64,000 bases of DNA from Tubulanus polymorphus (GCF_964204645.1 NW_027437473.1:1-64000); one strand, 5' to 3'. Counted from the stretch's first letter, positions 9,501-40,287 are shown. The notes: a model not told the origin generated them from the sequence alone. Translations and numbers: made by a program.

Positions 9501-11019
9501 AAAACGTTTAGTTGAAATAAAAATGACAATTTCAGGGTCATTGCTGAGACAAGACCCCAGAAGACTAGGCCACAGAGTACGTGTCTTCACCCCCAGCACA
9601 CAACAGAGTGGCCCGATTCAGGTGCGGCCTGTATGTTCTATTTCAGTGTGAAGAACAAGACCCCCTAGTCACAGAAGATTGAATCTGAAGTTGAATGATG
9701 ATGACAGAGTGACTGAAGAATTCCGGTGCGACCTGTATAACATGTCTCTATTTCAGTATCCCCCTCCCTAACCCCTAAACCCGAGCCCGAATAGGTAGGC
9801 CGAATATAGGTTAGGTTAGAATAGTTAGTTGATAAATCTGTGAATTAGAACATAATTTCAGCTGTTTATATAAAATACAGTTGTTATTTCAAGTGGAACT
9901 TTTTAACAATAAAAGTTGCATTTATTTACAATTGAACTGGATTGAAAATGTTTGACAGTTTGTGAGTTAAGTGTGATTTGATTAAGATGAAGCGTTGAAC
10001 TGTTGAACTCTACTTCTTATAAAATACAAATGACATTTACAACTGGTTTCAGGTTCAGACAGCACCCCACCCCACCCGGTCGGGTCCTATTCCTGAGGTA
10101 CCTGGGTTTCTGGTTTATTTGGTTGAATTAATTTACTGATTTTGGTCGCGCTGTTTTTGATGTCGATATTTCTCGCGTATATTTTTAGGAGACGCGGTTT
10201 TTTTAATTGATGATTCAAATCATTGAACGATTATTATATTTAAATCATTCACACCTTGTTATTTTGAGGTCTCCTCTCAAATTAATCTCGTAATAGCAGC
10301 GGTTGTTTTTGTACCATTGAACATCAGTGTTTTATTGCAAACATAGAAATCCATTACATAAAACAGAATTAGATTCAACAATTTATTACAATTATTCTAT
10401 ATGTAGATTATAAATGTTGGATGTGGCTACGAACTTTTTAAGTCATCATTTTGAAGTCATTTCGTGTTGTTTTATTTTCCTCACGCCGATTCTAGGTAGG
10501 TCTCTGTGTATTGTAATTTCGCGAGGTCAGTTCCTCCAATTTCACAACCTTCTCGTTGTCGATAAAATTAAATTTCAAAGTTTTAAAATTCACTGTTTGA
10601 ATTCGTTATAGTTGTGACAATAAACTCAACCAAACGACCATTTCAAATTACGTAGCTGAATTAGAAATAGGCCTGAAACAAACTAAGGCTCCGATGTAAA
10701 TGTAACGACTTATCAAAATGAAATTTAATTTCACTTCTTTCAGGTTTTGGTGTCTGTGAAGAGTTCACATGCTACTCATTGCTTCCTCTAAGATGGCGGA
10801 TGTTTATAGGTTATAGGATGGATATTCTCCTCCTCCACTAGGAGGCGCTGTAGGTAAGTCGCGGCACAACAATGTTGACAAAATAGAACAAATTCAGCTG
10901 GTAAATTTTGATAGCGTTGATAGAAGAGAAAGTTTTTAATTTATTTCTGGCGGTGGCAATTTAGATCAGGTCTGATTAGAAACTGTTGTAATCAGAGAAT
11001 AATAGCGGGTAGTCAGTGA

Positions 11020-12142
11020 AGAGTCACCACATCTGACTGGTCGCCAGTCACCACAACCTGACTGGTCACTGGTCACCACACCTGACTGGTCGCCAGTCAC
11101 CGAACCTGACTGGTCACTGGTCACCACACCTGACTGGTCACTGGTCACCGCACCTGACTGGTCACCAGTCACCGAACCTGACCGGTCACTGGTCACCACA
11201 CCTGACTGGTCACCAGTCACCGAACCTGACTGGTCACCAGTCACCGAACCTGACTGGTCACTGGTCACCACACCTGACTGGTCACCAGTCACCGAACCTG
11301 ACTGGTCACCAGTCACCGAACCTGACTGGTCACTGGTCACCGCACCTGACTGGTCGCCGGTCGCCACACCTGACTGGTCACCAGTCACCACACCTGACTG
11401 GTCACTGGTCACCACACCTGACTGGTCACCGGTCACCGAACCTGACTGGTCACCAGTCACCGAACCTGACTGGTCACCAGTCACCGAACCTGACTGGTCA
11501 CCAGTCACCGAACCTGACTGGTCATTAGTCACCACACCTGACTGGTCGCCGGTCGCCACACCTGACTGGTCGCCAGTCACCACACCTGCTGACTGGTCGT
11601 CGGTCACCACACCTGACTGGTCACCAGTCACCACACCTGACTGGTCGCCGGTCGCCACACCTGACTGGTCACTGGTCACCGCACCTGACTGGTCGCCTGT
11701 CACCGAACCTGACTGGTCACTGGTCACCACACCTGACTGGTCGCCGGTCGCCACACCTGACTGGTCGCCAGTCGCCACACCTGACTGGTCACCAGTCACC
11801 GAACCTGACTGGTCACCAGTCACCGAACCTGACTGGTCACCAGTCACCACACCTGACTGGTCTTCGGTCGCCACACCTGACTGGTCGCCAGTCACCACAC
11901 CTGCTGACTGGTCGTCGGTCACCACACCTGACTGGTCACCAGTCACCACACCTGACTGGTCGCCGGTCGCCACACCTGACTGGTCACTGGTCACCGCATT
12001 TGACTGGTCGCCTGTCACCGAACCTGACTGGTCAATGGTCACCACACCTGACTGGTCGCCGGTCGCCACACCTGACTGGTCGCCAGTCGCCACACCTGAC
12101 TGGTCACCAGTCACCGCACCTGACTGGTCACCGGTCACCACA
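11020..12142. repeat. 24-bp minisatellite (about 46 copies), open as (VTGDQSGV)n on the minus strand
   Basis: Unit cctgactggtcaccagtcaccaca with an internal inverted repeat. The paralog at 53415-53670 has only about 10 copies. Confidence 0.9.
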
Positions 12143-15221: not shown

Positions 15222-18200
15222 GACGGTAAAATTATGGCCATCATTAACAACATGAAGCACCATCTTAGTGGCTATGCAGATTTTGATGAGATATTGAATC
15301 GTCTAGTTTGATTAATCCTGTCAAATCATAATTCCTTGATAACAATTATTATTTAGCATCTTAAAATTATTTAGGAGGAGCTAATCCTTTCATATGCTCA
15401 TGGCTTTAGTTACTCGGTATGGTTTATTGCTAATAGTATGTGCTGTGATCACATATTTTCTACATCGTCAATTTTTCTTTGCTTTCATTGATTTTTTTGT
15501 GTATACATATGCGTACTATGTTCATAATGAGCGAAATTTATTATGTAACGGTGAGTGCCGTCGAAGTATTACTATCACGCTTCAATTCCACTAGCAGATG
15601 GCCAGTCATGCACATCCTGAGTTTATCGTAGGTTCAAGTAGTAAATATTATAAGGATTTAACGCAATTATCAAAGTTTGGATTATCAAACTTCTCCTTGT
15701 TTCATCTAAATATAAGGAGTTTTAATAAGAATTTTGAGAATTTGCAATTATATTTACACTCCCTCTGTTTCAATTTTGGGATCTTAGCTTTTACTGAAAC
15801 GTGGACTAAACTTCAACATGACAACAAGTCAATGTATAATTTGCCTGATTATGAGTCGATTTTCATAAGTAGACAGGATACGCGTGGTGGTGGAATAGCG
15901 ATGTTTGTCCACAACACCATTAAATTTAGGATACTGGATGATTTTACATGTGTAAATGACACATTCGAAAGTTTATTTATAGAAATCCAATTACCACATA
16001 ATATGTCAAAACATATTGTTGGCACTATCTATCGACCGCCTGATGCAAGTGTCAATAACTTTAATACTGATTTTCTACCACTCTTAGAAAACTTAACTAG
16101 AACAGGGCGTAAGTGCTTCATTTTGGGCGATTTCAATATAAATCTTTTCAACGCCGACTCTCATAAACCGACTGGAGATTTTATTTTTAATATGCTTTCA
16201 ACTGGTTTTACGAATTTAATAGATAAGTCAACACGAGTAACCGACAGATCTTCTACTCTTATTGACAATATATATTCAAACTGTTATTCTAGTTTCGATG
16301 CAATTTCAGGGATTCTGATCTATGATATATCTGACCACTTTCCAATTTTTGCAATTATGCCGGAAATCAAAGTCAACCATACATCAACTAGGACAGTTAG
16401 TTATCGAAAAATGTCAGATCATGATATCGCTCGATTTAAACGAAAGCTAATTGCACATGATTGGACTCATGTGTTTAATATCCATGATGCTAATGTTGCC
16501 TATAACTCTTTTTATGATGTATTCTATAAATACTACACGGAATGTTTCCCTATAATCAATAGAAAGTTTTCGATATATAGGGACAAGAAACACGGATGGT
16601 TTTCTAACGGTTTATTGATTTCTTTGAAAAAGAAGGATTCTCTTTATAGAAGATACCTGTCTAGTAAACTTCAAACTGATAGAGATATCTACAATAGATA
16701 TAGAAACGTTTTTAATACTTGTATCAAAAAGGCTAAAACGCTTCACTATAACTCTATGTTAAACAATGCGAGAGATCCCAAGGAAACCTGGAAAATAATT
16801 AATGACCTAATTAATAGAAAATCATCAAATTCTAAATATCCTGATGTTTTTGAACAGAATGGTGTTATGTACAAAAATAATGTTAGTATAGCCAATGAAT
16901 TTAATAAGTGTTTTGCACAAGCGGGTCCAAATCTAGCCAATGATATTTTACCTACTAACAAAACATTTTTTTCTTTTCTGGGTCCGCCACAACAAAATAA
17001 TATCTTTTTCTCTCCCACAGATTCTTTGGAAATTGAAAATATTGTTTCAAAATTTAAAAATAGTAATAACACTGGTCATGATGGTATCAATCAAAAGATC
17101 CTTAAGAGAGTAATTGACGCTATATCTCGGCCGTTAGCTCATATTTTAAATCTAAGTTTGATTAATGGACAAGTACCTGAATCCTTCAAAATATCTAAGA
17201 TATTACCTTTGTTCAAATCTGGAGATGTTTCACATTTTTCAAACTACAGACCAATATCAATACTCCCATGTATTTCTAAGATCTTAGAAAAAGTAGTTTA
17301 CAAAAGAGTTATAAGTTTTTTGGACAAGTATAAAATACTATCTCCATGTCAATTTGGATTTAGAAAAGACCATTCCACCAACATGGCTATTACTGTTATC
17401 ATAGATAAAATTATCAATAATTTAGACAATGGCAAATCAACTATAGGAATATTTTTAGACCTTTCGCGTGCATTTGATACAGTGAATCATGAAATTCTAT
17501 TGTCTAAACTTTGCCATTATGGCATCAGAGGTACGCCATTACTCTGGTTTAGAAACTATCTTTCAAACCGTTTTCAGACTGTTCTTTTTAAAGAGACTAC
17601 TAGCACTAGCTATCCTGTATTCTGTGGAGTGCCTCAAGGATCTATTTTGGGGCCGATCCTTTTCTTATTATATATAAATGACCTTGCAAACGCATCAAGC
17701 ATTTTTAATCTTATCATGTTTGCTGATGATGCTAATGTATTCACTTCTCATATCAATATTAATGAGTTAACTATAATAGTAAATACAGAACTACACAAAC
17801 TGAATATCTGGTTTCGGGCAAATAGGCTTTCATTGAATTTGAAAAAGACTCATTTCATGTTTTTCAGTCGTGCTAAACATAAACACTCAATTTCTATCAA
17901 AATCAACAATATGTCTATATCACAAGTCTCGACAACAAAATTTCTAGGCGTTCAAGTTGACGACCAGCTTACTTGGAAGTCACACATTAATAGCATCTGT
18001 ACTAAACTATCACGGTTCATTGGTATAATGGGTAGACTTTATGGAATTTTGTCAAAAACAACTTTACTGCAGTTGTATTATTCTTTCATTTATTGCCATC
18101 TCACCTATTGTAATATTGTATGGGGTAATACTTATCCTTCAAACTTAAGAAAGCTGGAACTTCTCCAGAAGAAAGCGGTCCGCATTATCTTTAAAACCGA

Positions 18201-19030
18201 TTTTAGAGCCCATACCTCACCATTATTTAAGTCTGCAAAAATTCTTAAATTGGCAGATATAAACAATTTTCAAATTGGACAATTCATGTATCTATATGTC
18301 AATAACAAGTTACCTGAGATGTTCAATAATTTTTTTAAGACGAATGACGTTGGATACAACACTAGAAACAGCAACAACATCCGCCCTGACTCATTCAAAT
18401 CAAATCTAAAAGGTTTCTCAATAAAAGTCAACGGTCCAAATATTTGGAATATTATGAATGATTCAATTAAAAACTCCCCTTCTAATGAAAGTTTCAAAAA
18501 TCGAACAAAAAACCATTTACTTTCTCATTATTAATCGTTACAGTTTATTCATGAAAATAATAATAATGATAATTATGTATAAGGTGCAATGACCTTCTCA
18601 AATGGTACTTACTTACGCTCATATGATGTATGTATAACCTTGGAATAAACTCCAAGGTATAACTTTATGTATTTATATGTATACATTTTTGTGTGTGTGT
18701 GTGTGTCTATTTGTAAATGTGTGTGAATATATGTGTGTGGTTTTCTTATATGTGGTGGGTGTTTTGGTGTGTGCGTGTGTGCTGCTTGCTTGCGAGTGTG
18801 TGTGCGTGTGTGTGTGTTTGTGTGTATCGTGCGTATTTCATCTCTATTTGTTCCTTTTGGGGTGCCTGATATTACAAGCTCTGCTTTCCTCTGGTTGCCC
18901 TGCTGTTATTTTACATCAGTTTATATATATTTTGTATGAACCAAATTAATCATCTATTGTAATTTTGTCTGGTATCTATTTATTGATGTAAATTATTCAG
19001 GAAATAAATAAATAATAAATAAATAATAAT
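15222..19030 (+). mobile_element. Non-LTR retrotransposon (CR1/L2-like group LINE), apparently recent
   Basis: Intact APE-RT ORF, GT-rich 3' UTR and (AAAT)n tail at about 19003-19030. The flanks join to give the empty site seen at about 31740-31780. Confidence 0.85.
15598..18534 (+). CDS. LINE ORF2: apurinic-like endonuclease plus reverse transcriptase (978 aa)
   Basis: EN motifs HLNIRS, FTETW, GGG, IYRPP, GDFN, IDNI, SDHFP. RT motifs YRPISILP, QFGFR, FLDLSRAFDTV, GVPQGSILGP, FADD, FLGV. Confidence 0.95.
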   Translation: MASHAHPEFIVGSSSKYYKDLTQLSKFGLSNFSLFHLNIRSFNKNFENLQLYLHSLCFNFGILAFTETWTKLQHDNKSMYNLPDYESIFISRQDTRGGGIAMFVHNTIKFRILDDFTCVNDTFESLFIEIQLPHNMSKHIVGTIYRPPDASVNNFNTDFLPLLENLTRTGRKCFILGDFNINLFNADSHKPTGDFIFNMLSTGFTNLIDKSTRVTDRSSTLIDNIYSNCYSSFDAISGILIYDISDHFPIFAIMPEIKVNHTSTRTVSYRKMSDHDIARFKRKLIAHDWTHVFNIHDANVAYNSFYDVFYKYYTECFPIINRKFSIYRDKKHGWFSNGLLISLKKKDSLYRRYLSSKLQTDRDIYNRYRNVFNTCIKKAKTLHYNSMLNNARDPKETWKIINDLINRKSSNSKYPDVFEQNGVMYKNNVSIANEFNKCFAQAGPNLANDILPTNKTFFSFLGPPQQNNIFFSPTDSLEIENIVSKFKNSNNTGHDGINQKILKRVIDAISRPLAHILNLSLINGQVPESFKISKILPLFKSGDVSHFSNYRPISILPCISKILEKVVYKRVISFLDKYKILSPCQFGFRKDHSTNMAITVIIDKIINNLDNGKSTIGIFLDLSRAFDTVNHEILLSKLCHYGIRGTPLLWFRNYLSNRFQTVLFKETTSTSYPVFCGVPQGSILGPILFLLYINDLANASSIFNLIMFADDANVFTSHININELTIIVNTELHKLNIWFRANRLSLNLKKTHFMFFSRAKHKHSISIKINNMSISQVSTTKFLGVQVDDQLTWKSHINSICTKLSRFIGIMGRLYGILSKTTLLQLYYSFIYCHLTYCNIVWGNTYPSNLRKLELLQKKAVRIIFKTDFRAHTSPLFKSAKILKLADINNFQIGQFMYLYVNNKLPEMFNNFFKTNDVGYNTRNSNNIRPDSFKSNLKGFSIKVNGPNIWNIMNDSIKNSPSNESFKNRTKNHLLSHY

Positions 19031-19100: not shown

Positions 19101-21796
19101 TCATTTATTGAGTTTTTTAAGTTCTGATATGATGTAATCTCTCGTATAGCGGTCGGTGCTCCTGCAGCGGATACACAGGTCAGAAAGATGCGGAAGATTA
19201 TTGATTAATTCGACGAATAAATCGATATCGTGCTGTGTATTAATCAGCGCGAGTGAACCGTGAAACTCTAAATAACGAATTGATGAGGCGTGTTTTAGTT
19301 GTTTAAAGATGCGATTGTTCTGTTCCGGTCTAACGAGACAGCTATCAATACGGACTTCTCGCAGCTGATTTACCGCATCTGACGATAGATACCGAACAAG
19401 TGCGTCAACATGAGCTTCTGACCACAACACTATTTCTAATACAGTCAGCCGCGGCAGGTGATCTAGAACGCGGTGTATTTGTAAATTAAATCCGTAAATG
19501 CCAAGACGTTTTAGTTTCGGCATTGAACCGACACTATCACTCATTGCTGCACATTCATCTGTCGTTAGTCCGCGCAGTCCGCGCAGTCCGAGCTGAATTG
19601 TTTCGATGTCTGACGATTTTAACGTGTTGTTTAAATCATTCAATTCCTCCGAACCGATCAAATCATTATCGAATATTACTCCACCAAGACATAAGGTTTT
19701 CAAACTCAGAATGATGTTTATCAGCCCTCTGGTTGTATTTCTATCGAGCTGATATTGACACCACGATCCGAGAGATAGATGTTTTATGGATGGATACGAT
19801 TTGTGAATATTGACTAAAATATAACCTAAACGTTCCGCACTAACACCAGTATTAATAAACAGACTCTCCACTGTATTGTGTGTGTTAGTATCAACACTGA
19901 TCAACCGCGCGTCATATTCAGTGTTAATCGAGTGACCTGTCTTAATCCATTCATTATTGAGTTTCTTGTAACATTCACCAGTGTCGTGGATTCCATCTCG
20001 CCGCACAAACCAGTTTAAACTGTAGCTTTTCTTACACATAGTCAAGTACTGATCGGGTTTTGATAACTCGTATGTGTATAATATCATACCGTGAAGACTA
20101 GTGTTACTCGCTATGGCTGTTTCTAATACGCGGTATTCGTCGGGTTTCAGTTCGTGAATACCCTGTATGTAAACTAGCTCGATCTGACATTGTTTGTGTT
20201 CAAGTATTTTTGCGAGCATGTTTATCCGCGATCTGCCATATACAGATACGAACAACATTTTCTGCATGTAGGGAACTATTTCACTAATGGCGTCGTCCGG
20301 CCAGTCGGCTTCATTCAGGCAGATTAACAACTGATCAGATAAAACAGTTCTTTCGGATCGGAGTTCGATGTAGCGTTCGTATTCGGGGATGAGCACCATC
20401 TCCCTAGTAACCGTAACCAAGGACTGGTACTCATCCGCTATTGTGACTGCTTTTAAATGTTCATCTATTAAAGTCTTGAAAAGTTCACCGAGGCCGCGGT
20501 TAAACTTGTAACGATACAGCAGCCCTGACATGAATCTCGGGTATAATTCACCATATTTCACAAGTTCGTCCGGTAGTTGTTCAAACGCGCATTTATTCCA
20601 GGGTATTTCACCACTGTTGTTGAATTGTACGACCGAGTGTACCGCCGCCAGAAATTCCTGCACAGATTTGTGTATGAACCGCAGCTGGACGGAGCGGTCT
20701 GATTTCCGTCGCGGCGACATCTCTTTGCACGTCAAAGCCGTCCTCTTCGATTCGTCGAGTTCAAGACGACTTTCGCTGAAGCTGTTTTGATGCTCGATGA
20801 GCGTCTCATACGCGACTTGACAAATTTGTTTAAGCGCTTTAGAATTTTCGATATTGCGGAAAAAACATTCCTTCGACAACTCGAGGCCCTCGCGTTTACT
20901 GATCAGAAAACATGTCAAATCGATGTAGATATCGGTGAGTTTTGATGGTATCATAATTTCTTCCTTGTCCATATACAGAAAACAAAACATAAGTAGTATC
21001 AGCGGGTTGTAGTAGATACTGTTAAATAAAGGTGGCGCTGCGTCTTTAAGCCTGTAGAATAGCTGATATGGATCGCGCTCGGGGAATTTTCTCTTCATAA
21101 TATCGATGACTTCTTCCTGTTTGAAGCCGGATATCGATACAACAGTGAATTTGGGATCAGTGACGATCATGCTGCCCCCGGACTCACGTGTTGTTATGAC
21201 GATATGCGCTTTCGGTAATTCATTGGTCACGTGTACGATGTCTATTTTCGCTTTATCGCTTTTTAACTCGTCGAAGCCGTCTAGAAAAAATATCGATTTT
21301 TCTGCATTTTCCCGTAAGAATCTCTCAAAACCAATCAGCAGATTCTCTTCGATTACTCGATTCAAAAGATTTTTGTAAATGTACTTATAAATACACGCGT
21401 TATCAGCGGGCAGTTCATTTAACGGTATATAGAATAACATTGCTTTGCTACAAAACTTTGCTACAAACTCCATTGTTGATGTTGTCCAGGTTAACACTTG
21501 ATTAACTACCTGAGTAGTTTTACCCATACCGGGTTCTCCTACGAGGCACACGGGTTTCACATCACTCTCTTTATAAGTGAAAAGTTTCTCGAAATGATCG
21601 GGTAAAATCAATGACTGCTCCTCACTTCCTTCATTTTTCTTCGGGTTTCGTTTTTGGGCTCGAATTTTCGCGTTTTCTTGGGTGAAGAAGTCGTTTAAAT
21701 TGGTGACTTCATCGCTCCACGAAACCTCTTTGTAATTTTCATCATCGATCATTCGTTGATACGTTTCTTTCAGGTTCTTCTGAACTTGATCAACAT
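19101..21796 (-). CDS. NLR1 large exon: NACHT NTPase plus LRR-like C-terminus
   Basis: Walker A GEPGMGKTT, Walker B FFLDGFDE, sensor-1 VITTR, NPL motif, winged-helix FIHKSVQEFLAA, and LxxLxL repeats. Phase-1 acceptor ttttatttttacag|AT, with the exon beginning at 21796. Confidence 0.92.
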
Positions 21797-24700
21797 CTGT
21801 AAAAATAAAACCAGTTTGAGATTTTTTTAGAATTTCTATGGCGGCTGATTTTGCCTGAAAATCATAGAATCATAGAAAATGTCATGAGCTTAAATTGTAC
21901 AATTGACCGCAGTTACAAAATATGCCTAGGTACCAAGGAACTAATGAGTTATTCTGCTATTCAACGCCCCCTAGTGACCTTAAACAAAAACCAACGAACC
22001 TGAAACTCACCACAATCATACATCATGTCATGAGCTAAAACTTTGCAATTGATTGCGGTGACAAAATATGCGCCAGAAAGAATCTTTCTGTGGGGTCGGG
22101 TTAGCAACAAGTTCGATCAGAGACATTCAAGGTCCCATCTACACGAGTGGAAAAATCCTTTATTTTCAATCTACACGAGGAAAACATTTCCAAAAGTCAC
22201 CTTTAAAAAAGTCGGCTTTTTCACCTGTTTTAAAAATTATACTTAATCTAAAGATAAACGGCTTCGTTGTTTTTGGTGAACTTCACGTGTTACTAAAACG
22301 AGGGCGATATCATCACAGCTCCGCAGTAAATACTGCAAACTACGCCGCGCATCAACATGCAATTTTCAGCACAGGACAAGATGTTTATTAATCTTTCTCA
22401 TCTTTCTCAGAATTTCAGTTTGAGTCAATCGGATGACAACAATTCATTTCATTTAGTTCTTAACTTTTGAAATGAGGATTGGAAAACTGTATTAGTCACG
22501 TGATACACGATGAACCGGTTTTCTGAACACAAATCTTCGCTGCTTACGCGCATAAGAAGTGCCGGTTTTATGTCCTTGCGCATGTAAACCAAATATACTT
22601 TGTTAATTTAGATTTCATCAAGAAAATGTTTCTAGGCCTCGGATATACAATACAATAAGTAGCGGCACACTTCAATGAGTATGAATTACTTTTTTAGAAA
22701 GGCCGATCAGCCATATCGGCGTGCAAAAGTAAAGGGATATCCCGATATGACATCAGGCGGGAAAATAATTATTATTTTACAGAATTCCTTCGATTTCTTC
22801 TTTCAGAAATAAATTCATTCCTTCTTTCAATAAACCCAGGAAAGTGCAACAAATTTCCCTGAACTAATTACAAAGCTACGTATCTTGTGTCAAATAACAG
22901 AAAAAATGGGAAAATGAAGTCGAATCACTAAAACATCGCGGTCGGCGTTGCTACGCGACCCGACCACAAAAATGAAATCAGTTTGAGATATTTTAAGCCG
23001 GGTGTAAGTCGGTTGCGTCGCGATAAGTCTTTTTACAGTTGCCAGGCGCCATTTTTGGGTACCCACCGGGTCCGCATTGTTGAATTCTTGTCCCAATTTT
23101 TTCCCCAGTTTAATTTTCTTATTTCGTTCATATCTTTGGATTTGATTAAGATAGAAATAAGGTAAAAATATCGATGAACTCAGCTGATAATTAACTTTTC
23201 TATGATATCACTCATTCATAAATTTAAAGCAACAATGCGCGCTGGTGAAGTTATAAACATTCATATCCTCTTCCCGATAATTCAACTTGAATTTTTGCTC
23301 ATCTCATTCAAAAGTTCATAATTCTTACAAATCTTAATCTACATTTTCATTATTCAATTTTGAAGGCAGGGTCTGGACTACCGATCCCCAACCCCGAAGT
23401 CTGTCCTTGTTTTACTAGAACTGCCTATATATCTTTATTTGCCATTTTTTTCAAATGACTAAGTGCCCTTATTTCCATAGTTACTGAAAACTTTGATTTC
23501 AATAAAGCAGGGGCCGGTAAAATTGTGAAATTTCCTGATATAAAGAAACGATCGTACTTGCGATTGTCACGTGGTAACTAAAATTGGAACCAAACCACGC
23601 AAAGATAAAAAGTTTCGAATTCTGGCCTATTAGGGAAAATTGGGTTTCAACACAGCTATTTAGTAATAGTCATTGACTTAGAGCTAAAATAACTGGTCTT
23701 TATGGTCAAAGCAGCTTGAAAACAAATGAAAGAGATTAAATTCTCGATAAGAAATTCTACGAATCCTTCAAAAAAAATTATTTCAAAACGCATCTCACAA
23801 CTATTGTGGGTTCGAATCCCAGTATTACTGGATCAAATCGCGCATCTCCCAGTCACTAGAGCGCGTAGCCGTAGGTCTATTGCGACGATCGCGTCGCAGT
23901 AAGTAGAACATGTGCGACTTGCTGCGACTGGCGTCGTTAAAATTTCTATGCTCGCTGATTTGGTCTCCAAATTTCCGGTCGATTGAGAAAAATTAGCTAA
24001 AAGAAAATATTATTTCCAGCTTGTTCGAAAACAGCTTTTATTTGAGCGCTCACTGAAAAAAACTTATAGGTCCTGATATCAACGAGTTGATCTAAGCAAA
24101 TCAACTTTTAAATCAATTCATTGATCGCGTTTACAAAATATGCAGAGTTACCAATATAAATGGAAAATTGTATTCAACTCAATATTTAATTCTCCTGGTG
24201 GGTTGAACAAAAGACCGAAATTCCATGTCCTATGACAATGCTGATAACGACCAAATATCAAGACTAAGTTAAAATCACTAACCCACTATGTGAAAATGAC
24301 ATTTTCCCCAAAAACACCTCTTTTCATCTGTGTGCAAGAAATTACGTTAAAATTGAATGATGAAAAAAGCCTGTCTGATGTGTCAGGAAATCCCCTTTCC
24401 AAAAAATACCAATCACAAATTTCAATAGAAAATACCAAACAATTAGGAAGCTACAGGTCTCGGAATTTAGACCAAAAATAGGTACAAAAAGGTCTCAGGA
24501 CGGCCATCTTGAGTCCGATCGACCCAATTTTAACTTTTTCTTATGCTGATGTGCGCTGTGGAGATATATACTTATAAAAGATAAAGGATATTGATTAAAG
24601 TCATTCCAATTCCAATATTTGATGAATTTTCATTATAAGTAATTTGTTTATTATTAAGATTGAAATTACGTTATTTTCGTTTTTCAATTCTCAAGTTAAT

Positions 24701-25385
24701 AAAATCATTGTAACCTTTAGAAAGTATTAAATCATCATTTCTTTCTTTAAAAGGAGTTTCAAGAATATTCATTATTTTTTCATCTTAATTACCTTTATAA
24801 TCTAAAACTGTATTGAATATTTGAGGATTTCTGGAGCCATTATGGAAAGTATCTATTAGTTCAGTAATTAAATATGTTTCATTTAATAATATTTGATTAA
24901 TTACAGTAATATTATCAATTTTATTTTGTCTTCCATAAACTAAATATGTTGCTGAGATATAATTTTCAATGTTTAACAATCAAGGAATTCATGCCTGAAA
25001 TGTGGCTATAAAAACTGATCGTATGTTTACTAGATTTTGAGTAGGTGTCAGTCACAAGTTCTTCCAATAGCAATAAATATGTATGAACTGGCTGCCTGTC
25101 AGCCATCTTGATTGTGAACAGGGACAATCCGAAATAACTGGATTCCATCTACGGACGAACGGGAAAAAAGTGAAATCAACAGCCAACTGGGACTAAAGTC
25201 CCAACTGGGCTTACACAATCGTACGCCACCTGGTGGATAGAATGTCTTGATATAATTTTCTATCATTTTAGTTAAAGATTTAGAACGATCTTTAGAGACA
25301 TGGTCAAAGACTTCGGACCCGTCTTATGATTTAGGATCACATTTGGACTCAAGCACGAGTTCTGATGGTAGAAATCTATAATTAC

Positions 25386-25520
25386 CGAGATTCTCAGCAG
25401 GTCTGTCGATAGTTTGTGTATCTCCCTGGTAAACATTCATCGTATTATTGTCACCGATTTGAACCATTTTCGATTGATTTACATTTATTCCTGGATTACT
25501 CTGTGCCATAGTACCACAAA
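25386..25520 (-). CDS. NLR1 N-terminal cassette exon carrying a canonical RHIM
   Basis: cag|...CTCG|gtaatt, 135 nt, phase 1-1. Encodes (V)CGTMAQSNPGINVNQSKMVQIGDNNTMNVYQGDTQTIDRPAENL. Confidence 0.85.
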
Positions 25521-26021
25521 CTGACAAACAGGATTTAGAATTCAGTCATTTTATCTCAATAAGTGCAGCACATTTTTCCTGACCTAATTGTTTTGTCCAG
25601 TATTTACACAATCAGCCTCTACTCATATTCAGACTGAAGTTTTCTTTATTTCCGCTAAAAGTCGTTTTTCCGATAAACTGTTTATATGTTTTTATATTTA
25701 CCCTGGACTGATAAACAAACTGTGTCACCAGATCTGACTGTTTTTATTCCTACTCGAGACTGATAAACAAACTGTGTCACCAGATGTGATAAGAGACCAT
25801 AATTCAAAATACCGATTATATAACCAGACCCTGACAGTATTAGTCAAAGATTTAAAACAATCGAGTTGGTGGGTCCATTTTGGTCCTCAGAATTTTGCCA
25901 AAGACAATGTATTACTTTCGCCTCAAAACTTTATACCGGTTTTATATGCGAGATCACATTTAGACTCAAGTCACATCATTCTGTACTGAACTGAACTCTG
26001 ATGGTTAAAATCTATAATTAC

Positions 26022-26165
26022 CGAGATTCTCAGCAGGTCTGGTGCTGGCTTGTGTAACTGCGGGGATAATTTGAGTCACTGTCGTCGTATTATTGTCACC
26101 CCTTACACTTAAGTTAGAATTGTCTGCATTTATTCCTGGATTACTCTCCGCCATAGTACCGTTTA
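26022..26165 (-). CDS. NLR1 upstream cassette exon (degenerate RHIM-like); probable start ATG at 26154
   Basis: 144 nt, phase 1-1, same splice context. Encodes (V)NGTMAESNPGINADNSNLSVRGDNNTTTVTQIIPAVTQASTRPAENL, with Kozak-like ACTATGG. The spliced model gives 987 aa. Confidence 0.75.
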
Positions 26166-26783
26166 CTGAAAAACAGAATTTAGAATTCAGTCATTTTATC
26201 TCAACAAGTGCAGCACATTTTTCTGACCTAATTGTTTTGTCAAGTTTTTACACAATTAGCCTTTATCAGGGTTCTATGGTGGCTGATAAGGGCCAAATGC
26301 ATTAATTAATAACACGACCTCGATTACAGAAAAACGCAAATCGAAACCTACCTGCTACCGCGCAAAAACGAACTTTTCGTAAAAACGAAAAACCGCGCAA
26401 AAACGAAATATTATAGAGCAAAAACGAATATTTTCGTTTTCAATTTGTCAATCGGTTTGTCTTATTGTTACAAGACACATCTATGCTATATATAGACTCA
26501 CTCAGGTGATTACTAACAAACACAGCCATATATAGTACTCTAACCTTTATTCGCACACACAAAATGTCAAAAATACAAAAAAATAACTTTTTGTTTTTTT
26601 TTTCATAAAAATCAAGACAAATACTGGCTATGATTTTTTTTAAACATACGAATAAATAGCGACTTGAAACTAAATGAATACACCCGCTACGAACATGTGA
26701 CATCTGAATATGAATAGGGTCTATTCACATTCAGACGTCACGAGTTGAAAGTGACAAAATCGAGGAAATGAACAGCAACAATT

Positions 26784-28410
26784 AGCTATCAGACAGTTCA
26801 CTAGCTGTCAGACAGTTCACTAGCTGTCAGACAGTTCACTAGCTATCAGACAGTTCACTAGCTGTCAGACAGTTCACTAGCTGTCAGACAGTTCACTAGC
26901 TGTCACACAGTTCCCTAGCTGTCAGACAGTTCACTAGCTGTCAGACAGTTCACTAGCTGTCACACAGTTCACTAGCTGTCACACAGTTCACTAGCTATCA
27001 GACAGTTCACTAGCTATCAGACAGTTCACTAGCTGTCAGACAGTTCACTAGCTGTCAGACAGTTCACTAGCTGTCAGACAGTTCACTAGCTATCAGACAG
27101 TTCACTAGCTATCAGACAGTTCACTAGCTGTCAGACAGTTCACTAGCTGTCAGACAGTTCACTAGCTATCAGACAGTTCACTAGCTGTCAGACAGTTCAC
27201 TAGCTGTCAGACAGTTCACTAGCTGTCACACAGTTCCCTAGCTGTCAGACAGTTCACTAGCTGTCAGACAGTTCACTAGCTGTCAGACAGTTCACTAGCT
27301 GTCACACAGTTCACTAGCTATCAGACAGTTCACTAGCTATCAGACAGTTCACTAGCTGTCAGACAGTTCACTAGCTGTCAGACAGTTCACTAGCTGTCAG
27401 ACAGTTCACTAGCTATCAGACAGTTCACTAGCTATCAGACAGTTCACTAGCTGTCAGACAGTTCACTAGCTGTCAGACAGTTCACTAGCTATCAGACAGT
27501 TCACTAGCTATCAGACAGTTCACTAGCTGTCAGACAGTTCACTAGCTGTCAGACAGTTCACTAGCTGTCAGACAGTTCACTAGCTATCAGACAGTTCACT
27601 AGCTATCAGACAGTTCACTAGCTGTCAGACAGTTCACTAGCTGTCAGACAGTTCACTAGCTGTCAGACAGTTCACTAGCTATCAGACAGTTCACTAGCTA
27701 TCACACAGTTTACTAGCTGTCACACAGTTTACTAGCTGTCACACAGTTCACTAGCTGTCAGACAGTTCACTAGCTGTCACACAGTTCACTAGCTATCAGA
27801 CAGTTCACTAGCTGTCAGACAGTTCACTAGCTATCAGACAGTTCACTAGCTATCAGACAGTTCACTAGCTGTCACACAGTTCACTAGCTGTCACACAGTT
27901 CACTAGCTGTCACACAGTTCACTAGCTGTCACACAGTTCCCTAGCTGTCAGACAGTTCACTAGCTGTCAGACAGTTCACTAGCTATCAGACAGTTCACTA
28001 GCTATCAGACAGTTCACTAGCTGTCAGACAGTTCACTAGCTGTCAGACAGTTCACTAGCTGTCACACAGTTCACTAGCTATCAGACAGTTCACTAGCTGT
28101 CACACAGTTCACTAGCTGTCACACAGTTCACTAGCTGTCACACAGTTCACTAGCTGTCACACAGTTCACTAGCTGTCACACAGTTCACTAGCTGTCACAC
28201 AGTTCACTAGCTGTCACACAGTTCACTAGCTATCAGACAGTTCACTAGCTGTCACACAGTTCACTAGCTATCAGACAGTTCACTAGCTGTCACACAGTTC
28301 ACTAGCTATCACACAGTTCACTAGCTGTCACACAGTTCACTAGCTATCACACAGTTCACTAGCTATCACACAGTTCACTAGCTGTCACACAGTTCACTAG
28401 CTATCACACA
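26784..28410. repeat. 19-bp satellite array (about 85 copies)
   Basis: Unit agctRtcaSacagttcact with period 19. Confidence 0.95.
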
Positions 28411-28790
28411 TTGTGAGAGTGTATCTTTATGAAAACACCCCCTCCCCTCCTACCTAAATCACAATCGCGTTCTGTTCACAAAAATGACAAGAATATTTAA
28501 ACAACATACCTCTCAATATGACAAAACTGTAAGATGAATATATACTGTTTCAAAACCGTACACGTCCACAGGACTCACTACTGCTCAATAATAAACCATA
28601 CTAAACAAAAAAACTCCTCTCGATGGCAAAATCATCAACTGGTTGATGATGGCCATAAATTGGTTGAAGTAGAATAAGTCTGAACTGCGCACTTATACCG
28701 ATCGATATAAAACCGCACCCCTGTCACGTGATCTATTTTTGGATATGATCGTCACGTGTCCTGTAAAACCGGTCCTGTAAAATTTACAGT

Positions 28791-28970
<180 letters not shown>

Positions 28971-30179
28971 CGACGTTACAAGAGTCCTCCCGGAACTCCC
29001 ACAGCTTGAGGTGAAACAGCATCACGCCTAGGGTGACCCCCGGGGCCTTATCCGGTGATCCTCTACTGCCGAGGTCCGCATGAACACACCTGCTACACCA
29101 CAATGCAGGGGTACTCGCACATATAAATCAGCCACAAACAACCAAAATCAACCTTAATGACCACGAGGAAAATGAATCGATGTACACTATATTTTTATTA
29201 GAAATACACTAAACGTAATATCGGACTGATCGACTATATAAACTGCTCTCTTCCACTAGCGGCGACTCAGCCCTATCTATGTCGACACTAAATTGTGAGG
29301 CTCCCATCTGCTCAGCGGAGCGTACCGGTGAGAAAGAAGGAAATAACTCTTGACTTTATATACGCGGACTTAATTATCCCGTGACACCGAAACTTTCGCG
29401 AAGCACGCGACTCAAGGTTCGTCATACAAAACGTTACGGGAACATATAATTATTTCACACTATCAAACGAGGTCATCTCGACACATTAACATTGCACGTA
29501 TAAACTTTATTTATCCACTTATTCCTGCATCATAGGGCGTTAAACATTAAACTACGACTAAGGGACACATATTTCCCTTGGAAACATATAGGGGACTTGT
29601 TTTACTATATACACAAATGTACGGACGACTCAACTACGACGCGCCTACATAGATAGAAAATGGCCTGTTGACATCTAAGCGAAAGTCCGGCAATGGCGGC
29701 GGGTCTGTGCTAGTGAAACGGGTTTCGTCTTTGAAGCGAGTTGTTCTCCCGTGTTCGAGTGAGTAGTTATCTCCGGGGGTCGAATGTAAGTGAAACGAGA
29801 AACAGTTGATTGAGTATATCTTATTCTCTTTATTCTTCCGGGGTGTTCCGTCCGATGAGTCTCCGATGAGTTGTGTGTGTTCGCTCTCAATCAGGAGTCA
29901 CGAGTCTCGAGTCTCCCACTTTGCTACTGACCAGCCTATTTATACAGATCCCAGCCCCCTTTGTTCTACTGTGACAGATGGCTTCATTAGTTCCAAAGAG
30001 GGGGCTGTATTTGTTCTGGTAAGTGCCAAAGTTACTAAATTTAGAACAAATCGATAAAATATGAATTTAGGGAGACACGCGCCGTAGTGGCTGTTATTCA
30101 ATAATTGTGGTCAGATGTTGACACGTGGTGACGCGTGCCTCCCAGGGAAGACTGCCTTTGTGTCACTAGGTACGGTTTA

Positions 30180-30720
30180 CCATATAGCCTTTTGCATGTG
30201 ACACATTTTGTGTAATACCTTTTTAACCAACGATCTGAGAGATGGTATCCAAAAACGCCCGCGAATTTGGCTCAGTCACACCTGGGCCACAGTGCAGAAC
30301 TGAAAGATGGGCATTTCTCACAATTAGCGTAGCTAAGTAGGAATCTAAGTAGGATTTCTGCGGGCCGTTGAGACGTCTGCGTTTTGCAGTCGGTCTGCGC
30401 ACCTAAGATAGCCTTGGCCGTCTCTAGATATGCCCAATTGTCTAATTATAGCGAGTCCTTTGGTGGATTTATTGGAGTAAATATGCTCCGTGACATCAGG
30501 GAAGAGCAAGGTTTGAGCATCTTGCACCCACAATTTTTCTGCTTCGAAGATATCGACGGAAGAGACCTCGCATGTAGCCTGGTTGGGACTTGGTTTGAAA
30601 GCTTGTTTCACTATCGCTGTCACGCGTAGAAGTCGCCTATAATCGTTAAACTAGTGTATGTCAATAGCATTGCTGATGCGAGGCTTGGCCTCCGTGATAT
30701 CCGTGTTTGCGAAGTCATTT
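30180..30720 (-). mobile_element. BEL/Pao pol relic (RNase H to integrase region)
   Basis: EAEKLWVQDAQ...QLGISRDGQGYLRCADRLQNA, followed by degraded H..G...QIRGRFWIP...C integrase zinc-finger-like text. Confidence 0.7.
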
Positions 30721-30735
30721 TCAATTTCGCTGCTG

Positions 30736-30938
30736 TGTCTGCGGGTAAGATTCATTATTCATAGACATGAATCTAATTATCGCCGGTGTCTGCGGGTAAG
30801 ATTCATTATTCATAGACATGAATCTAATTATCGCCGGTGTCTGCGGGTAAGATTCATTATTCATAGACATGAATCTAATTATCGCCGGTGTCTGCGGGTA
30901 AGATTCATTATTCATAGACATGAATCTAATTATCGCCG
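30736..30938. repeat. 51-bp tandem repeat (4 copies)
   Basis: tgtctgcgggtaagattc at 30736, 30787, 30838 and onward. Confidence 0.9.
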
Positions 30939-31809
30939 GAGACTCCTCGTCACAGAATTAATCATTCGATTTTACATAGTAAATAATGTGTGAAAACTGT
31001 GACTGACTCCGGACGCGCGGCCTTCCGTTCCGTGTGCAAAACCATACTGAAGCAAATCACCCAAAATATCTGAATGAAAACAGAACATTTACTGTTTGTC
31101 AATGAATCGTGAAAAGGAATTTCATTTAATTTTTTGAAATGACATAAGCCGCAATTACGGGGAGACGATTTGAGACAATTTAGAAATGGAAACTTGTGTA
31201 AGATTAAACCGGGCCGTCCATTTTAGAAACGGAAACTTGGGTAAGATTAGACCGGGCCCAGTCTATAGAAATGGAAACTTGTGGTCCAATCTCCTCACAA
31301 TGAAAAATGCCCAGCTCCAAATAAACACCACACAACAACCTGTATAAACTAGATGAGGCGTCTTTATTTTCAGTAGAATATATTGGGCTTGAGGGGACTG
31401 CCCAAGCCCCAAGCGTACATTATTTTCAGTAGAATATATTGGGCTTGAGGGGACTGCCCAAGCCCTAAGCGTACATTATTTTCAGTAGAATATATTGGGC
31501 TTGAGGGGACTGCCCAAGCCCTAAGCGTACATTATTCTTAGCAGAATATAGGTCGAGACCTTCTCAGTCCCGTACAGTGAATAAACATTGGTTAACAATA
31601 AAATAGACACGAAATACACAATTATATAAACAATTGACTACAGCGAGCAAGATAAAAATAGTGAAACGATTAAAATCAGTAAGAAGAGAACAAAAATTGA
31701 AAAGATACATGAAGTAATAATTAGTCCATATCTCACACTTGACGATATCTTGTGTGAGATCGAATCATCGGGTTTTTCAAATTGATTGAATAAATTCTTG
31801 ATTTATTTA

Positions 31810-34523
31810 CTATATCTGTATTTCTACTCTCAGTCTTTTATTGAGTTTTTTAAGTTCTGATTTGATGTAATCTCTCGTCGTATAGCGGTCGGTGCTCCAG
31901 CAGAGGATATACAGGTCAGAAAGATGCGGAAGATTATTGATTAATTCGACGATTAATTTGACGAATAAATCGATATCGTGCTGTGTATTAATCGGCGCGA
32001 TTGGTGAACGGTGAAACTCTAAATAACGAATTGATGAGACGTGTTTTAGTTGTTTAAAGATACGATTGTTCTGTACCGGTCTATCGGGATAGCTATAAAT
32101 ACGGACTTGTCGCAGCTGATTTACCGCATCTGACGATAGATACCGAACAAGTGCGTCAACATCAGCTTCTGACCGCAACACTATTCCTAATACAGTCAGC
32201 CGCGGCAGGTGATCTAGAACGCGGTGTTTTTGTAAATTAAATCCGTTAATGACAAGACGTTTTAGTTTCGGCATTGAACCGACACTATCACTCATTGCTG
32301 CACATTCATCTGTCGTTAGTCCGAGCCGTCCGAGCTGAATTGTTTCGATGTGTGAAGATTTTATCGTGTTGTTTAAATCATTCCATTCCTCCGAACCGAT
32401 CAAATTCTTATCGAATATTAATCCACTAAGACATAAGGTTTTCAAACTCGGAATGATGTTTATCAGCCCTCTGATTGTATTTCTATCGAGCTGATATTCC
32501 CACAGAGATCTGAGAGATAGATGTTTTATGGATGGATACGATTTGTGAATATTGACTAAAATATAACCTAAACGTTCCGCACTAACACGAGGATCAATAA
32601 ACAGACTCTCCACTGTATTGTGTGTGTTAGTATCAACACTGATCAACCGCGCGTCATCTTCAGTGTTAATCACGTGACTTGTAATAATCCATTCATTATT
32701 GAGTTTCTTGTAACATTCACCAGGGTCTAATCCACCTCGCTCCACAAACCAGTTTATACTGTTGCTCTTCTGACACATAGTCAAGAACTGATCGCGTATT
32801 GATGACCTGTATGTAACTAATATCATACCGTGAAGACTAGTGTTACTCGTTATGGCTGTTTCTAATACGCGGCATTCGTCGGGTTCCAGTTCCTTATAAC
32901 TGTGAATAATGTAAACTAGCTCGATCTGACATTGTTTGTGTTCGAGTATTTTTGCGAGCATGTTTATCCACGATCTGCTATATACAGATACGAACAACAT
33001 TTTCTGCATGTAGGGAACTATTTCACTAATGGCGTCGTCCGGCCAGTCGGCTTCATCCATGCAGATTGACAACTGTTCAGATAAAACAGTTCTTTCGGAT
33101 CGGAGTTCGAAGTAGCGTTCGTAATCGGGAATGAGCGCCATCTCCCTAGTAACCATATCCAAGGAATCGTACGTCATACTATCCGCTATTGTGACTGCTT
33201 TTAAATGTTCATCTATTAAAGTCTTGAAAAGTTCACCGAGGCCGCGGTTATACTTGTAACGATACAGCAGCCCTGACATGAATCTCGGGTATAATTCACC
33301 ATATTTCACAAGTTCGTCCTGTAGTTGTTCAAACGCGCATTTATTCCAGGGTATTTCACCGCTGTTGTTGAATTGCACGACCGAGTGTACCGCCGCCAGA
33401 AATTCGTGCACAGATTTGTGTATGAACCGTAGCTGGACGGAGCGGTCTGATCTCCGTCGCGGCGACACCTCTTTACACGTCAAAGCCGTCCTTTTCGATT
33501 CGTCGAGTTCAAGACGACTTTCGGTGAAGCTGTTTTGATGCTTGATGAGCGTCTCATACGCGACTTGACAAATTTCTTTAAGCGCTTCGGAATTTCCGAT
33601 ATTGCGGAAAAAACATTCCTTCGACAACTCGAGGCCCTCGCGTTTACTGATCAGAAAACATGTCAAATCGATGTAGATATCGGTGAGTTTTGATGGTATC
33701 ATAATTTCTTCCTTGTCCATATACAGAAAACAAAACATATGTAGTATCAGCGGGTTGTAGTAGATACTTTCAAATAAAGGTGACGCTGCGGCTTTAAGCT
33801 TGTCGAATAGCTGTTCTGGATTGGGGAATTTTCTCTTCATAATATCGATGACTTCTTTCTGTTTGAAGCCGGATATCGATACAACAGTGAATTTGGGATC
33901 AGTGACGATCATGCTGCCCCCGGACTCACGTGTTGTTACGACGATATGCGCTTTCGGTAATTTATTGGTCACGTGTACGATGTATTCCTTCGCTTTATCG
34001 CTTTTTAACTCGTCGAAGCCGTCTAGAAAAAATATCGATTTTTCTGCATTTTCCCGTAAGAATCTCTTAAAACCAATCGGCAAATGCTCTTCGATTTCTC
34101 GACTCAAAAGATCTTCGTAAATGTACTTATAAATACACGCGTTATCAGCGGGCAGTTCATTTAACGGTATATAGAATAACATAGGAAATCTTTTCAGAAA
34201 CGGTGATCGCTCCCATGACAACACTTGATTAACTACCTGAGTTGTTTTACCCATACCGGGTTCACCTACGAGGCACACGCGTTTCATAGCACGCTCGTCA
34301 TAAGTGAAAAGCTTCTCGAAATGATCGGGTAAAATCACTGGCTGCTCCTCACTTCCTTCATTTTTCTTCGGGTTTCGTTTTCGGGGTCGAATTTTCGCGT
34401 GTTCTCGGGTGAAGAAGTCGTTGAAATTGACGAATTCATCGCTCCACGAAACCTCTTTGTAATTTTCATCATCGATCATTCGTTTATACGTTTCTTTCAG
34501 GCTCTTCCGAACTTGATCAACAT
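31810..34523 (-). CDS. NLR2 large exon: NACHT plus LRR
   Basis: Same NACHT motifs (GEPGMGKTT, LDGFDE, FIHKSVHEFLAA). Phase-1 acceptor with the exon beginning at 34523. Confidence 0.92.
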
Positions 34524-37500: not shown

Positions 37501-38683
37501 TCATCTAAATTACCTTTATAATCTAAAACTGTATTGAATATTTTAGGATTTCTGGAGCCATTATGGAAAGTATCTATTAGTTCAGTAATTAAATATGTTT
37601 CATTTAATAATATTTGATTAATTACAGTAATATTATCAATTTTATTTCGTCTTCCATAAACTAAATTTGTTGCTGAGATATAATTTTCAATGTTTAACAA
37701 TCGAGGAATTCATGCCTGAAATGTGGCTATAAAAACTGATCGTATGTTTACTAGATTTTGAGTAGGTGTCAGTCACAAGTTCTTCCAATAGCAATAAATA
37801 TGTATGAACTGGCTGCCTGTCAGCCATCTTGATTGTGAACAGGGACAATCCGAAATAACTGGATTCCATCTATGGACGAACGGGCAAAAAGTGAAATCAA
37901 CAGCCAACTGGGACTAAAGTCCCAACTGGGCTTAAACAATCGTACGCCACCTGGTGGATAGAATGTCTTGATATAATTTTCTATTATTTTAGTTAAAGAT
38001 TTAGAACGATCTTTAGAGACATGGTCAAAGACTTCGGACCCGTCTTATGATTTAGGATCACATTTGGACTCAAGCACGAGTTCTGATGGTAGAAATCTAT
38101 AATTACCAATTGATATTGTGCAACTCGATACTAACGACTATAGCCGCGATCACGGGGAGACGATTTGACCCGGGCTGCAAAATTGGTACGGATCAGGTCC
38201 GAGTCAAATTGGCCTTAGAGATTGCATTCACACGCAAACCTCTCACTTGATACTAAACAAAACGAAGTGAGTCACTACCGGAACCAGTTGACCCGCACCT
38301 GGTCCGACGTTTTTGGTCAAATTGGGCCCAGGTCCATTTTGAATTATAGGGTTAGGATTGAAACGTGATAGTATCTGATCACGGTAACTTTCACTCTTAT
38401 TTTACTGTTAACAGTATTTATACTGTTAATCTGTTTTTATTCCTACTCGAGACTGATAAACAAACTGTGTCACCAGATGTGATAAGAGACCATAATTCAA
38501 AATACCGATTATAGAACCTGACCCTGACTGTTTTAGTCAAAGATTTAAAACAATCGGGTTGGTGGACAATATATTACTTTCGCCTCAAAACTTTACACCG
38601 GATTTATATACGAGATCACATTTAGACTCAAGTCACATCATTCTGTACTGAACTGAACTCCGATGGTTAAAATCTATAATTAC

Positions 38684-38779
38684 CGAGATTCTCAGCAGGT
38701 CTATCGACGGTTTGCTCCTCGTCATCGCGAACATTTTCTGCATTTATTCCTGGATTACTCTGTGCCAAAGCACCACAAA
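38684..38779 (-). CDS. NLR2 cassette exon 6 (RHIM-less acidic type)
   Basis: 96 nt, AG/GT, phase 1-1; (V)CGALAQSNPGINAENVRDDEEQTVDRPAENL. Confidence 0.7.
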
Positions 38780-39815: not shown

Positions 39816-39953
39816 CGAGATTCTCAGCAGGTCTGTCGCTGGCTTGAGTAACTGCGTGGATAATTTGATTCACTGTATTATTGTCACCGATTATACTTAA
39901 ATTAGAATTGTCTGCATTTATTCCTGGATTACTCGCCGCCATAGTAACGTTTA
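39816..39953 (-). CDS. NLR2 cassette exon 5 (RHIM-like variant)
   Basis: 138 nt, phase 1-1; (V)NVTMAASNPGINADNSNLSIIGDNNTVNQIIHAVTQASDRPAENL. Confidence 0.72.
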
Positions 39954-40287
39954 CTGAAAAACAGAATTTAGAATTCAGTCATTATATCTCAACAAGTGCA
40001 GCACAGTTTTCCTGAAAGAAATATGCTGGTTGGCCAAATTGTAAATTAGTACATATCACATGCAGAAGACCAGATAACAATGATAAAAGCTTACTATAAT
40101 ACAAGTGTAGCAACCCAATCTCAATAATTACAATAATGAAATGTATGAATTTGTGAGCAGTATTCGCCTGTTAATAATAAGACATAAACTACATGAAACA
40201 CATTCTAGCCACAAATATTACCAGTCTCGCTAGCCATATACTCATTCTGTACTGAACTGAACTTTGATGGTTAAAATCTATAATTAC

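Follow-up and report, generated by a model that had tools for sequence, protein, structure and literature searches.

The stretch of DNA analyzed here, referred to as the window, comprises bases 1-64000 (64,000 nucleotides) of C56, an unplaced 68-kb contig (NW_027437473.1) in the 268-Mb assembly of Tubulanus polymorphus (Nemertea, Spiralia; GCF_964204645.1), and it encodes animal nucleotide-binding, leucine-rich repeat receptors (NLRs). With a probability of roughly 55%, the locus is best explained as a recently expanded cluster of NACHT-LRR genes with optional cassette exons carrying the RHIM, a short motif known from the necroptosis proteins of mammals, where it forms amyloid, and through which their products would nucleate RHIM signalling. 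A first-pass annotation, made from the sequence of the window, had proposed that the NLR encoded at 19101-26165 begins with a RHIM amyloid motif instead of a death-fold domain, and overall this interpretation is partly supported by the evidence presented below.

Three paralogous NACHT-LRR exons, all encoded on the minus strand, form the backbone of the cluster. Exons were searched one by one, the only joined models being RefSeq proteins; 13 RefSeq proteins of T. polymorphus were found to match, and one of these, P0001, is 100% identical to the first of the three exons:

19101-21796, minus strand: NLR1 NACHT-LRR terminal coding exon (LOC141914658), identified by its open reading frame (ORF), acceptor and Pfam NACHT match, with 100% tblastn matches to P0001 and P0014.
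31810-34523, minus strand: NLR2 NACHT-LRR exon (LOC141914657 isoforms X1 and X3), Pfam NACHT 59.8 bits, with 100% tblastn matches to P0017 and P0006.
57007-59876, minus strand: NLR3 NACHT-LRR exon (LOC141914657 isoform X2), Pfam NACHT 56.5 bits, with a 100% tblastn match to residues 106-1061 of P0002.

The acceptor of the NLR1 exon lies at 21796 behind ...ttttacag and is in phase 1, as had been noted in the first-pass annotation, because the first two bases of the exon complete a split codon; the stop codon occupies 19101-19103. The NACHT domain (PF05729) was matched with 48.3 bits over residues 81-238, and the ORF contains the P-loop GEPGMGKT. Pfam matches to leucine-rich repeats (LRRs) were sub-threshold (LRR_14, 21 bits vs. 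a cut-off of 40), and the ESM Atlas placed the C-terminal third of the protein (residues 600-942) with the LRR portions of NLRC4, NLRP, and further LRR clusters at template-modelling (TM) scores of 0.59-0.73. By both of its domains, NLR1 is thus a NACHT-LRR animal NLR. Pairwise comparison of the three ORFs (19104-21794, 31813-34479, and 57010-59940, minus strand) gave synonymous divergences (dS) of 0.04-0.06 and ratios of nonsynonymous to synonymous divergence (dN/dS) of 1.2-1.45. That all three (~890-980 aa) are still open despite 130-180 substitutions per pair, coupled with these ratios, fits diversifying selection, as in immune receptors, better than decay.

Upstream of the NACHT-LRR exons lie short cassette exons, recognizable by a conserved donor and intron flank that occurs nine times in the window against an expectation of zero:

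25386-25520, minus strand: type A RHIM cassette, 135 nt, phase 1-1, core KMVQIGDNNTMNV, based on sequence, splice sites, translation and the Pfam RHIM match.
26022-26165, minus strand: type B cassette, 144 nt, core LSVRGDNNT; its ATG (26152-26154) is the start of RefSeq isoform X1, and residues 1-44 of P0014 map to 26154-26023.
63448-63582, minus strand: type A cassette of NLR3, 135 nt, counted as a RHIM variant (VQMG), core SMVQMGGNNTMNV, inside the coding sequence of P0002 and P0017.
38684-43382, minus strand: array upstream of NLR2 with six cassettes, five of type C and one of type B (39816-39953), based on donor pattern and translation.
38069-38107, minus strand: donor-side intron flank orphaned in NLR2 by the loss of a type A exon, identical to the 39 bases found after the 25386 and 63448 exons.

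By translation the nine exons fall into three types: those with the RHIM core (A; 25386 and 63448), those with a degenerate core (B; LSVRGDNNT or LSIIGDNNT, in exons 26022 and 39816), and those from which the core has been deleted (C; five copies at 38.7-43.3 kb). Splice signals are intact in every copy. The 25386-25520 exon is flanked by a ...tttgtcag acceptor and a gtaattat donor and its peptide contains ...INVNQSKMVQIGDNNTMNV..., while the minus-strand exon at 63448-63582 encodes ...VNVNESMVQMGGNNTMNV... and yields a peptide 77% identical to the former. With the 26022-26165 exon, the ATG has A at -3 and G at +4 and is followed by a phase-1 donor. Inspection of splice sites and peptides thereby confirmed the three cassettes of the first-pass annotation, namely a 135-nt phase 1-1 exon encoding a RHIM, its homolog upstream of NLR3, and a second, related exon supplying a start codon in strong context. 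Its statement that no death-fold or TIR exon is visible also held: no match to CARD, PYD, Death, or TIR was found in eight of the longest minus-strand frames (71-105 aa) of 21797-31809, a set that exons below ~70 aa could escape, nor in the RefSeq models of these genes.

Assignment of the type A motif begins with the Pfam profile. The 25386-25520 peptide was matched by the RHIM family (PF12721) with 22.0 bits (E 1.1e-4), the cut-off being 20 bits, and a six-frame scan of the 268-Mb genome located the same match at 25435-25488 with 21.9 bits. Only five matches in the genome exceeded the cut-off, three of which are NLR cassette exons; of the remaining two, one belongs to a TIR-like ORF and the other to an unknown gene. 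The same scan of 14 control genomes returned none. The exon carries the core tetrad VQIG, preceded by NVN and followed by DNN, and the five type A exons compared in this genome show no variation at core positions V, Q, G, N, N, T, M, and N while the flanks vary. A profile combining these five exons with three other Tubulanus RHIMs had the RHIM segments of RIPK3, RIPK1, and TRIF as its seven best matches in the Protein Data Bank (PDB), a result that is partly circular because the three additional sequences had been picked by the RHIM model itself. The alignment falls exactly on the core: relative to RIPK3 (VNIYNCSGVQVGDNNYLTM), the exon has V at I452, V at V458, Q at Q459, I at V460, G at G461, D at D462, and N at both asparagines. 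According to a recent deep mutational scan, the aliphatic tetrad is essential for nucleation and flanking glycines are key to the fold, and the aligned positions include those essential in the scan. Four Tubulanus RHIM classes share the pattern VQ[IL]G..N.., and three of the four also share an NTM.V tail. At the level of sequence, then, the type A motif is a RHIM. A separate candidate assignment of the 25386 exon, to EAD10, was rejected as sub-threshold (15.2 bits vs. a cut-off of 24.1).

Whether the motif is spliced into protein was addressed by mapping the RefSeq models back to the window by tblastn. With LOC141914657, isoform X2 (P0002) consists of two type C exons from beyond 64 kb, the variant exon at 63582-63448, and the NLR3 NACHT exon at 59876. 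Isoform X1 (P0017) has the same three leader exons, skips the NLR3 NACHT exon, and continues with four cassettes at 38-41 kb and the NACHT exon at 34523; these four array cassettes are joined in series in both P0017 and P0006. The model of P0017 joins 63448-63582 to 41229-41323 (minus strand) over ~22 kb, across the entire NLR3 NACHT exon. Two receptors may accordingly share leader exons, or the model may be a mapping artefact among near-identical cassettes. The variant exon is also joined to a NACHT exon in P0004 and P0020, encoded by paralogs on contigs C8 and C6, such that it is in the coding sequence of three genes (LOC141914657 X1/X2, LOC141909594, and LOC141907592). With LOC141914658, only the last 18 codons of the 25386 exon are in annotated coding sequence (P0001). 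Hence, of the two junctions proposed in the first-pass annotation, that of 25386 to 21796 is annotated in RefSeq, as is serial splicing of cassettes, and that of 26022 to 25520 is unsupported, one isoform passing from 26022 to 21796 and the other beginning at Met 25440; inclusion of the canonical core is likewise not annotated. An exact-product look-up for P0014 returned no record. The canonical RHIM core is therefore best described as a putative part of the focal gene's protein.

The same architecture recurs outside the window. Type A is the cassette adjoining the NACHT exon at each of five loci, which are distributed over C56, C6, and C8, and the same exon order recurs in independent C6 and C8 loci. 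Paralogs of greater distance, located on C9, instead carry tandem 21-aa units (MAESNPGINAENAEIVQIGDK), seven of which precede the NACHT domain in P0013. A 258-aa open frame of tandem 21-aa RHIM-like units was also noted at C9:3605386-3606159 (plus strand), just upstream of a NACHT exon. In other NACHT-LRR paralogs, P0007, P0012, and P0018 (C6), the cassettes are replaced in the annotation by a signal peptide, an extensive extracellular region, and a transmembrane segment. An exhaustive search for homologs of P0002 retrieved 578 NACHT relatives, and among the best 150 the cassette motif occurs only in Tubulanus paralogs; the closest foreign relatives are amphioxus and starfish proteins (23-29% identity), and those retrieved have neither the cassette motif nor a Pfam RHIM match. 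Where the loci were compared, the 200-nt intron flank on the 3' side of the type A exon (25186-25385 and 63248-63447 in the window) is 96-99% identical among four of five. The identity of the exon itself is 82-93% for most pairs, with one pair at 99%, so the exon is diverging faster than its downstream intron. This difference could reflect a conserved splicing element, selection acting on the exon, or gene conversion that ends at its border.

Potential signalling partners were sought among the other RHIM genes of the genome:

C3:26755416-26756684, minus strand: single-exon TRIF/TICAM-like TIR-RHIM ORF of 418-422 aa (candidate assignment), Pfam RHIM 21.7 bits (GVQLGNSNTMTV), with an acidic repeat tail.
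C7:3976836-3977870, minus strand: RHIM-like exon (NVQIGNNN, 16 bits, below the cut-off) following a hydrophobic segment, with a death-domain exon (50.7 bits) ~700 nt downstream.
C8:4552373-4553065, minus strand: 231-aa open frame ending in a RHIM (CVQLGNGNTMEV) that, at 19.4 bits, narrowly misses the cut-off of 20.

With the first of these, the ESM Atlas related the initial 175 residues by features to TICAM2 (0.91, 178 shared) and by structure to TICAM1/TRIF and other TIR clusters (TM 0.60-0.69, with 0.66-0.69 for the TIR domains of TICAM1/2), each of the ten structural matches listed bearing a TIR or TRIF family. Neither Pfam nor a phmmer search against the PDB detected a TIR at this N-terminus, a homolog search with the ORF found none, and a single-sequence AlphaFold2 (AF2) model of the TIR-like domain had a predicted local distance difference test (pLDDT) score of 33. 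The TIR identity is thus a lead, as it comes solely from the ESM Atlas and Pfam sees no TIR, and the ORF is regarded as a candidate adaptor of the TRIF/TICAM type. The C7 locus could encode a membrane protein combining a RHIM with a death domain, and the RHIM frame on C8 is followed by several ~270-aa open frames with helical repeats and no Pfam match. A six-frame genome search for HeLo (PF14479) and MLKL_N (PF22215) gave no match, though a search conducted exon by exon does not prove their absence. With TIR-like and death domains, and not HeLo or MLKL, among the candidate partners, the downstream logic looks animal-like. Co-folding of the NLR RHIM exon peptide with the RHIM segment of the TICAM-like ORF gave a score of 0.02, which is evidence neither way.

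Under the preferred reading, each gene pairs one large NACHT-LRR exon with an N-terminal tail assembled from short symmetric (phase 1-1) cassettes that can be serially joined or skipped. Ligand sensing by the LRRs would lead to oligomerization of the NACHT domains, thereby clustering the N-terminal RHIMs and nucleating a RHIM cross-beta assembly. This assembly may then recruit RHIM adaptors, for which the TRIF/TICAM-like protein and the RHIM-like/death-domain gene are candidates, and such recruitment would feed into animal-type signalling pathways. Inclusion or skipping of a cassette would act as a switch for the ability of an isoform to signal through the RHIM. A broader proposal, possible and decidedly tentative, is that RHIM amyloid templating is the means by which this spiralian family of NLRs signals, and that the choice of cassette (RHIM, degenerate, null, or tandem array) governs if, and to what extent, an isoform nucleates. 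Taken together with amphioxus, the bilaterian ancestor would then already have possessed RHIM-tipped NLRs, which correspond to the receptor half of the design seen in fungi and bacteria; in animals their connections would run to adaptors of the TRIF-like and death-domain kinds and not to pore formers.

Several observations weigh against RHIM signalling by these genes. Isoform X1 of LOC141914658 (P0014) joins 26154-26023 directly to 21796-19104 and so skips the RHIM exon, and isoform X2 (P0001) starts at Met 25440, just past the core. The canonical VQIG core is present in none of the RefSeq models retrieved, and the C6 paralog with a VQIG exon has no matching RefSeq protein. Three public runs cover the stretch, in introns as well as exons, and are therefore DNA, whereas one small, presumed RNA run has zero coverage. 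At the NLR2 locus, alignment at 38069-38107 showed the intron flank to be retained and the type A exon to be swapped for unrelated sequence; the RHIM cassette of NLR2 has been lost. The VQMG exon at 63448-63582 had no Pfam RHIM match even at E 10, and the M at its third position falls outside the canonical (V/I)-Q-(V/I/L/C)-G. It is counted as a RHIM variant only through its 77% identity to the scoring exon. In the profile comparison called for in the first-pass annotation, the 25386 exon scored as a RHIM and the 63448 and 26022 exons did not. Besides the circularity of the mixed profile, neither a profile of NLR exons only nor single peptides of 44 and 21 aa retrieved a RHIM chain from the PDB. 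The dN/dS of the type A exon is about 1 or more (range about 0.7-3.3), over very few sites. Consistent with the first-pass expectation that the partner lies outside the window, no other RHIM gene is on the 68-kb contig, the non-cassette RHIM matches being dispersed on C3, C7, and C8; and amyloid nucleation by these receptors is itself inferred from their sequences.

Much of this would suit cassettes that are fast-evolving, disordered N-terminal spacers, with type A decaying or usually skipped and its RHIM likeness residual or convergent, and with no amyloid signalling at all. The skipping of the type A exon in X1, the lack of the core in X2, and the loss of the exon from NLR2 would all be expected of such spacers, as would the failure of types B and C and of the VQMG variant to score as RHIMs, the elevated dN/dS of the type A exon, and its lower conservation (82-93%, one pair 99%) relative to the intron flank (96-99%, four of five loci). 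This explanation is nonetheless considered unlikely, since VQ.G.NNTMN is invariant in five type A exons amid variable flanks, splice signals are intact in all copies, and the position of type A beside NACHT is kept in five loci; moreover, the score lies above the Pfam curated cut-off, matches of this kind are very rare genome-wide, and the genome encodes other RHIM proteins with similar cores. The first-pass annotation had regarded transcripts that skip these exons as telling against it: X1 does skip the RHIM exon, and the variant exon is included in three annotated genes.

Repeated SNPGIN...VQIGD units might alternatively fold within one molecule as a beta-solenoid, providing a structured oligomerization or effector domain and not a templating amyloid. 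The seven 21-aa units that precede NACHT in P0013 on C9 were modelled by single-sequence AF2 as a regular solenoid with two strands per 21-residue repeat (pLDDT 70.5, predicted TM score 0.70), with many solenoid folds, both beta-helices and LRRs, among its weak neighbours in the PDB. No neighbour was found at E 0.001, however, the model was built without an alignment, and the genes of the window have one to few cassettes with polar linkers and no tight 21-aa array; a solenoid is thus held to be improbable, and it overlaps with RHIM templating because a HET-s-like solenoid is itself an amyloid fold. More improbable still is an artefact of annotation or assembly, by which the contig would represent either a haplotig or a duplicate, now decaying, of the cluster on C8, and the multi-cassette models would be products of ambiguous RNA mapping. 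The contig is indeed unplaced and only 68 kb long, the 63448 exon is 99% identical to a C8 exon, the cassettes have identical donors and flanks, one isoform spans a whole NACHT exon over 22 kb, and dN/dS is at or above 1. Set against this are the three intact ORFs of ~890-980 aa despite 130-180 substitutions per pair, the recurrence of the exon order at the independent C6 and C8 loci, and the coverage of the stretch by public DNA runs.

Three further elements were observed in the window. A LINE-type (long interspersed nuclear element) ORF2 with endonuclease and reverse transcriptase at 15598-18534 (plus strand) lies between genes as a retroelement insertion, and a zinc-knuckle ORF at 5255-5737 (minus strand) represents a retroelement insertion within the NLR cluster. 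A 24-nt minisatellite at 10966-12141 (minus strand) reads as ~48 copies of VTGDQSG(S/V) and is matched by the Pfam T4 gp5 beta-helix repeat with 67.7 bits.

Reviews of amyloid signalling present NLR-coupled motifs as fungal and bacterial, and animal RHIMs as belonging to kinases and adaptors. The literature search found no paper on nemertean NLRs and no experimental follow-up of the amphioxus RHIM-NACHT report considered below. The presence of many RHIM-tipped NLR genes in a second animal phylum, distant from the first, offers a tractable set of natural variants (canonical, VQMG, and degenerate cores, a cassette lacking the core, and tandem arrays), with a TRIF-like candidate adaptor in the same genome. 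Of relevance to comparative immunology, it opens the questions of whether animal NLRs can nucleate RHIM amyloids and whether the link between NLRs and the RHIM is ancestral or convergent.

The concept of a RHIM-tipped animal NLR is not new, because a RHIM-NACHT-repeat protein of Branchiostoma, BF82280, was described within a large RHIM family in that genus (Kajava, Klopffleisch, Chen and Hofmann, 2014; PMC4262963). In these proteins the RHIM was located where death-fold domains are usual, subsets of the families were recognized in other invertebrates, and the likeness to fungal NWD2 was drawn explicitly; BF82280 was identified by sequence profile only (PMC4262963). The Branchiostoma floridae protein resembles the Tubulanus genes in domain layout, being an animal STAND/NLR-type protein with a RHIM replacing the death-fold domain. 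Tubulanus, however, belongs to another phylum, and its RHIM occupies a symmetric cassette to itself, accompanied by variant cassettes and others without the core, with inclusion that looks optional. What is new is this spiralian occurrence and the modularity of the cassettes with their optional inclusion.

Fungal NWD2/HET-S and PNT1/HELLP and the bacterial BASS-NLR pairs, whose PP and BASS3 motifs are regarded as RHIM homologs, likewise have a short amyloid-type motif N-terminal of a NACHT or NB-ARC repeat receptor. Their effector gene is adjacent, with the same motif on a HeLo, HELL, or other executioner domain, whereas the Tubulanus genes lack an adjacent partner, the six-frame search had no HeLo or MLKL_N match, and the other RHIM genes have TIR-like or death domains. 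Of the "fungal-style design in an animal" put forward in the first-pass annotation, the RHIM on NACHT-LRR genes stands; the design was already published for Branchiostoma, and without HeLo or MLKL among them the candidate partners look animal-like. A relay from receptor to adaptor through RHIM-like motifs is also known from Drosophila, with the cRHIM proteins PGRP-LC, PGRP-LE, and IMD and a death-domain adaptor (PMC4262963). The fly receptors differ in being peptidoglycan-recognition proteins, not NLRs, and in their motif consensus, but the relay is likewise an invertebrate one, and the C7 locus of Tubulanus pairs a RHIM-like exon with a death-domain exon. With RIPK1, RIPK3, TRIF/TICAM1, and ZBP1, the Tubulanus motif shares the (V/I)Q(V/I/L/C)G core together with flanking aliphatic and N residues. 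The mammalian bearers of the RHIM are kinases, a TIR adaptor, and a Z-nucleic-acid sensor, and to our knowledge no mammalian NLR carries one. No RIP-type kinase bearing a RHIM was encountered in Tubulanus, where no search aimed at one was made. Among the mammalian proteins, TRIF has a possible counterpart in Tubulanus, whose genome encodes a candidate adaptor of the same TIR-plus-RHIM design.

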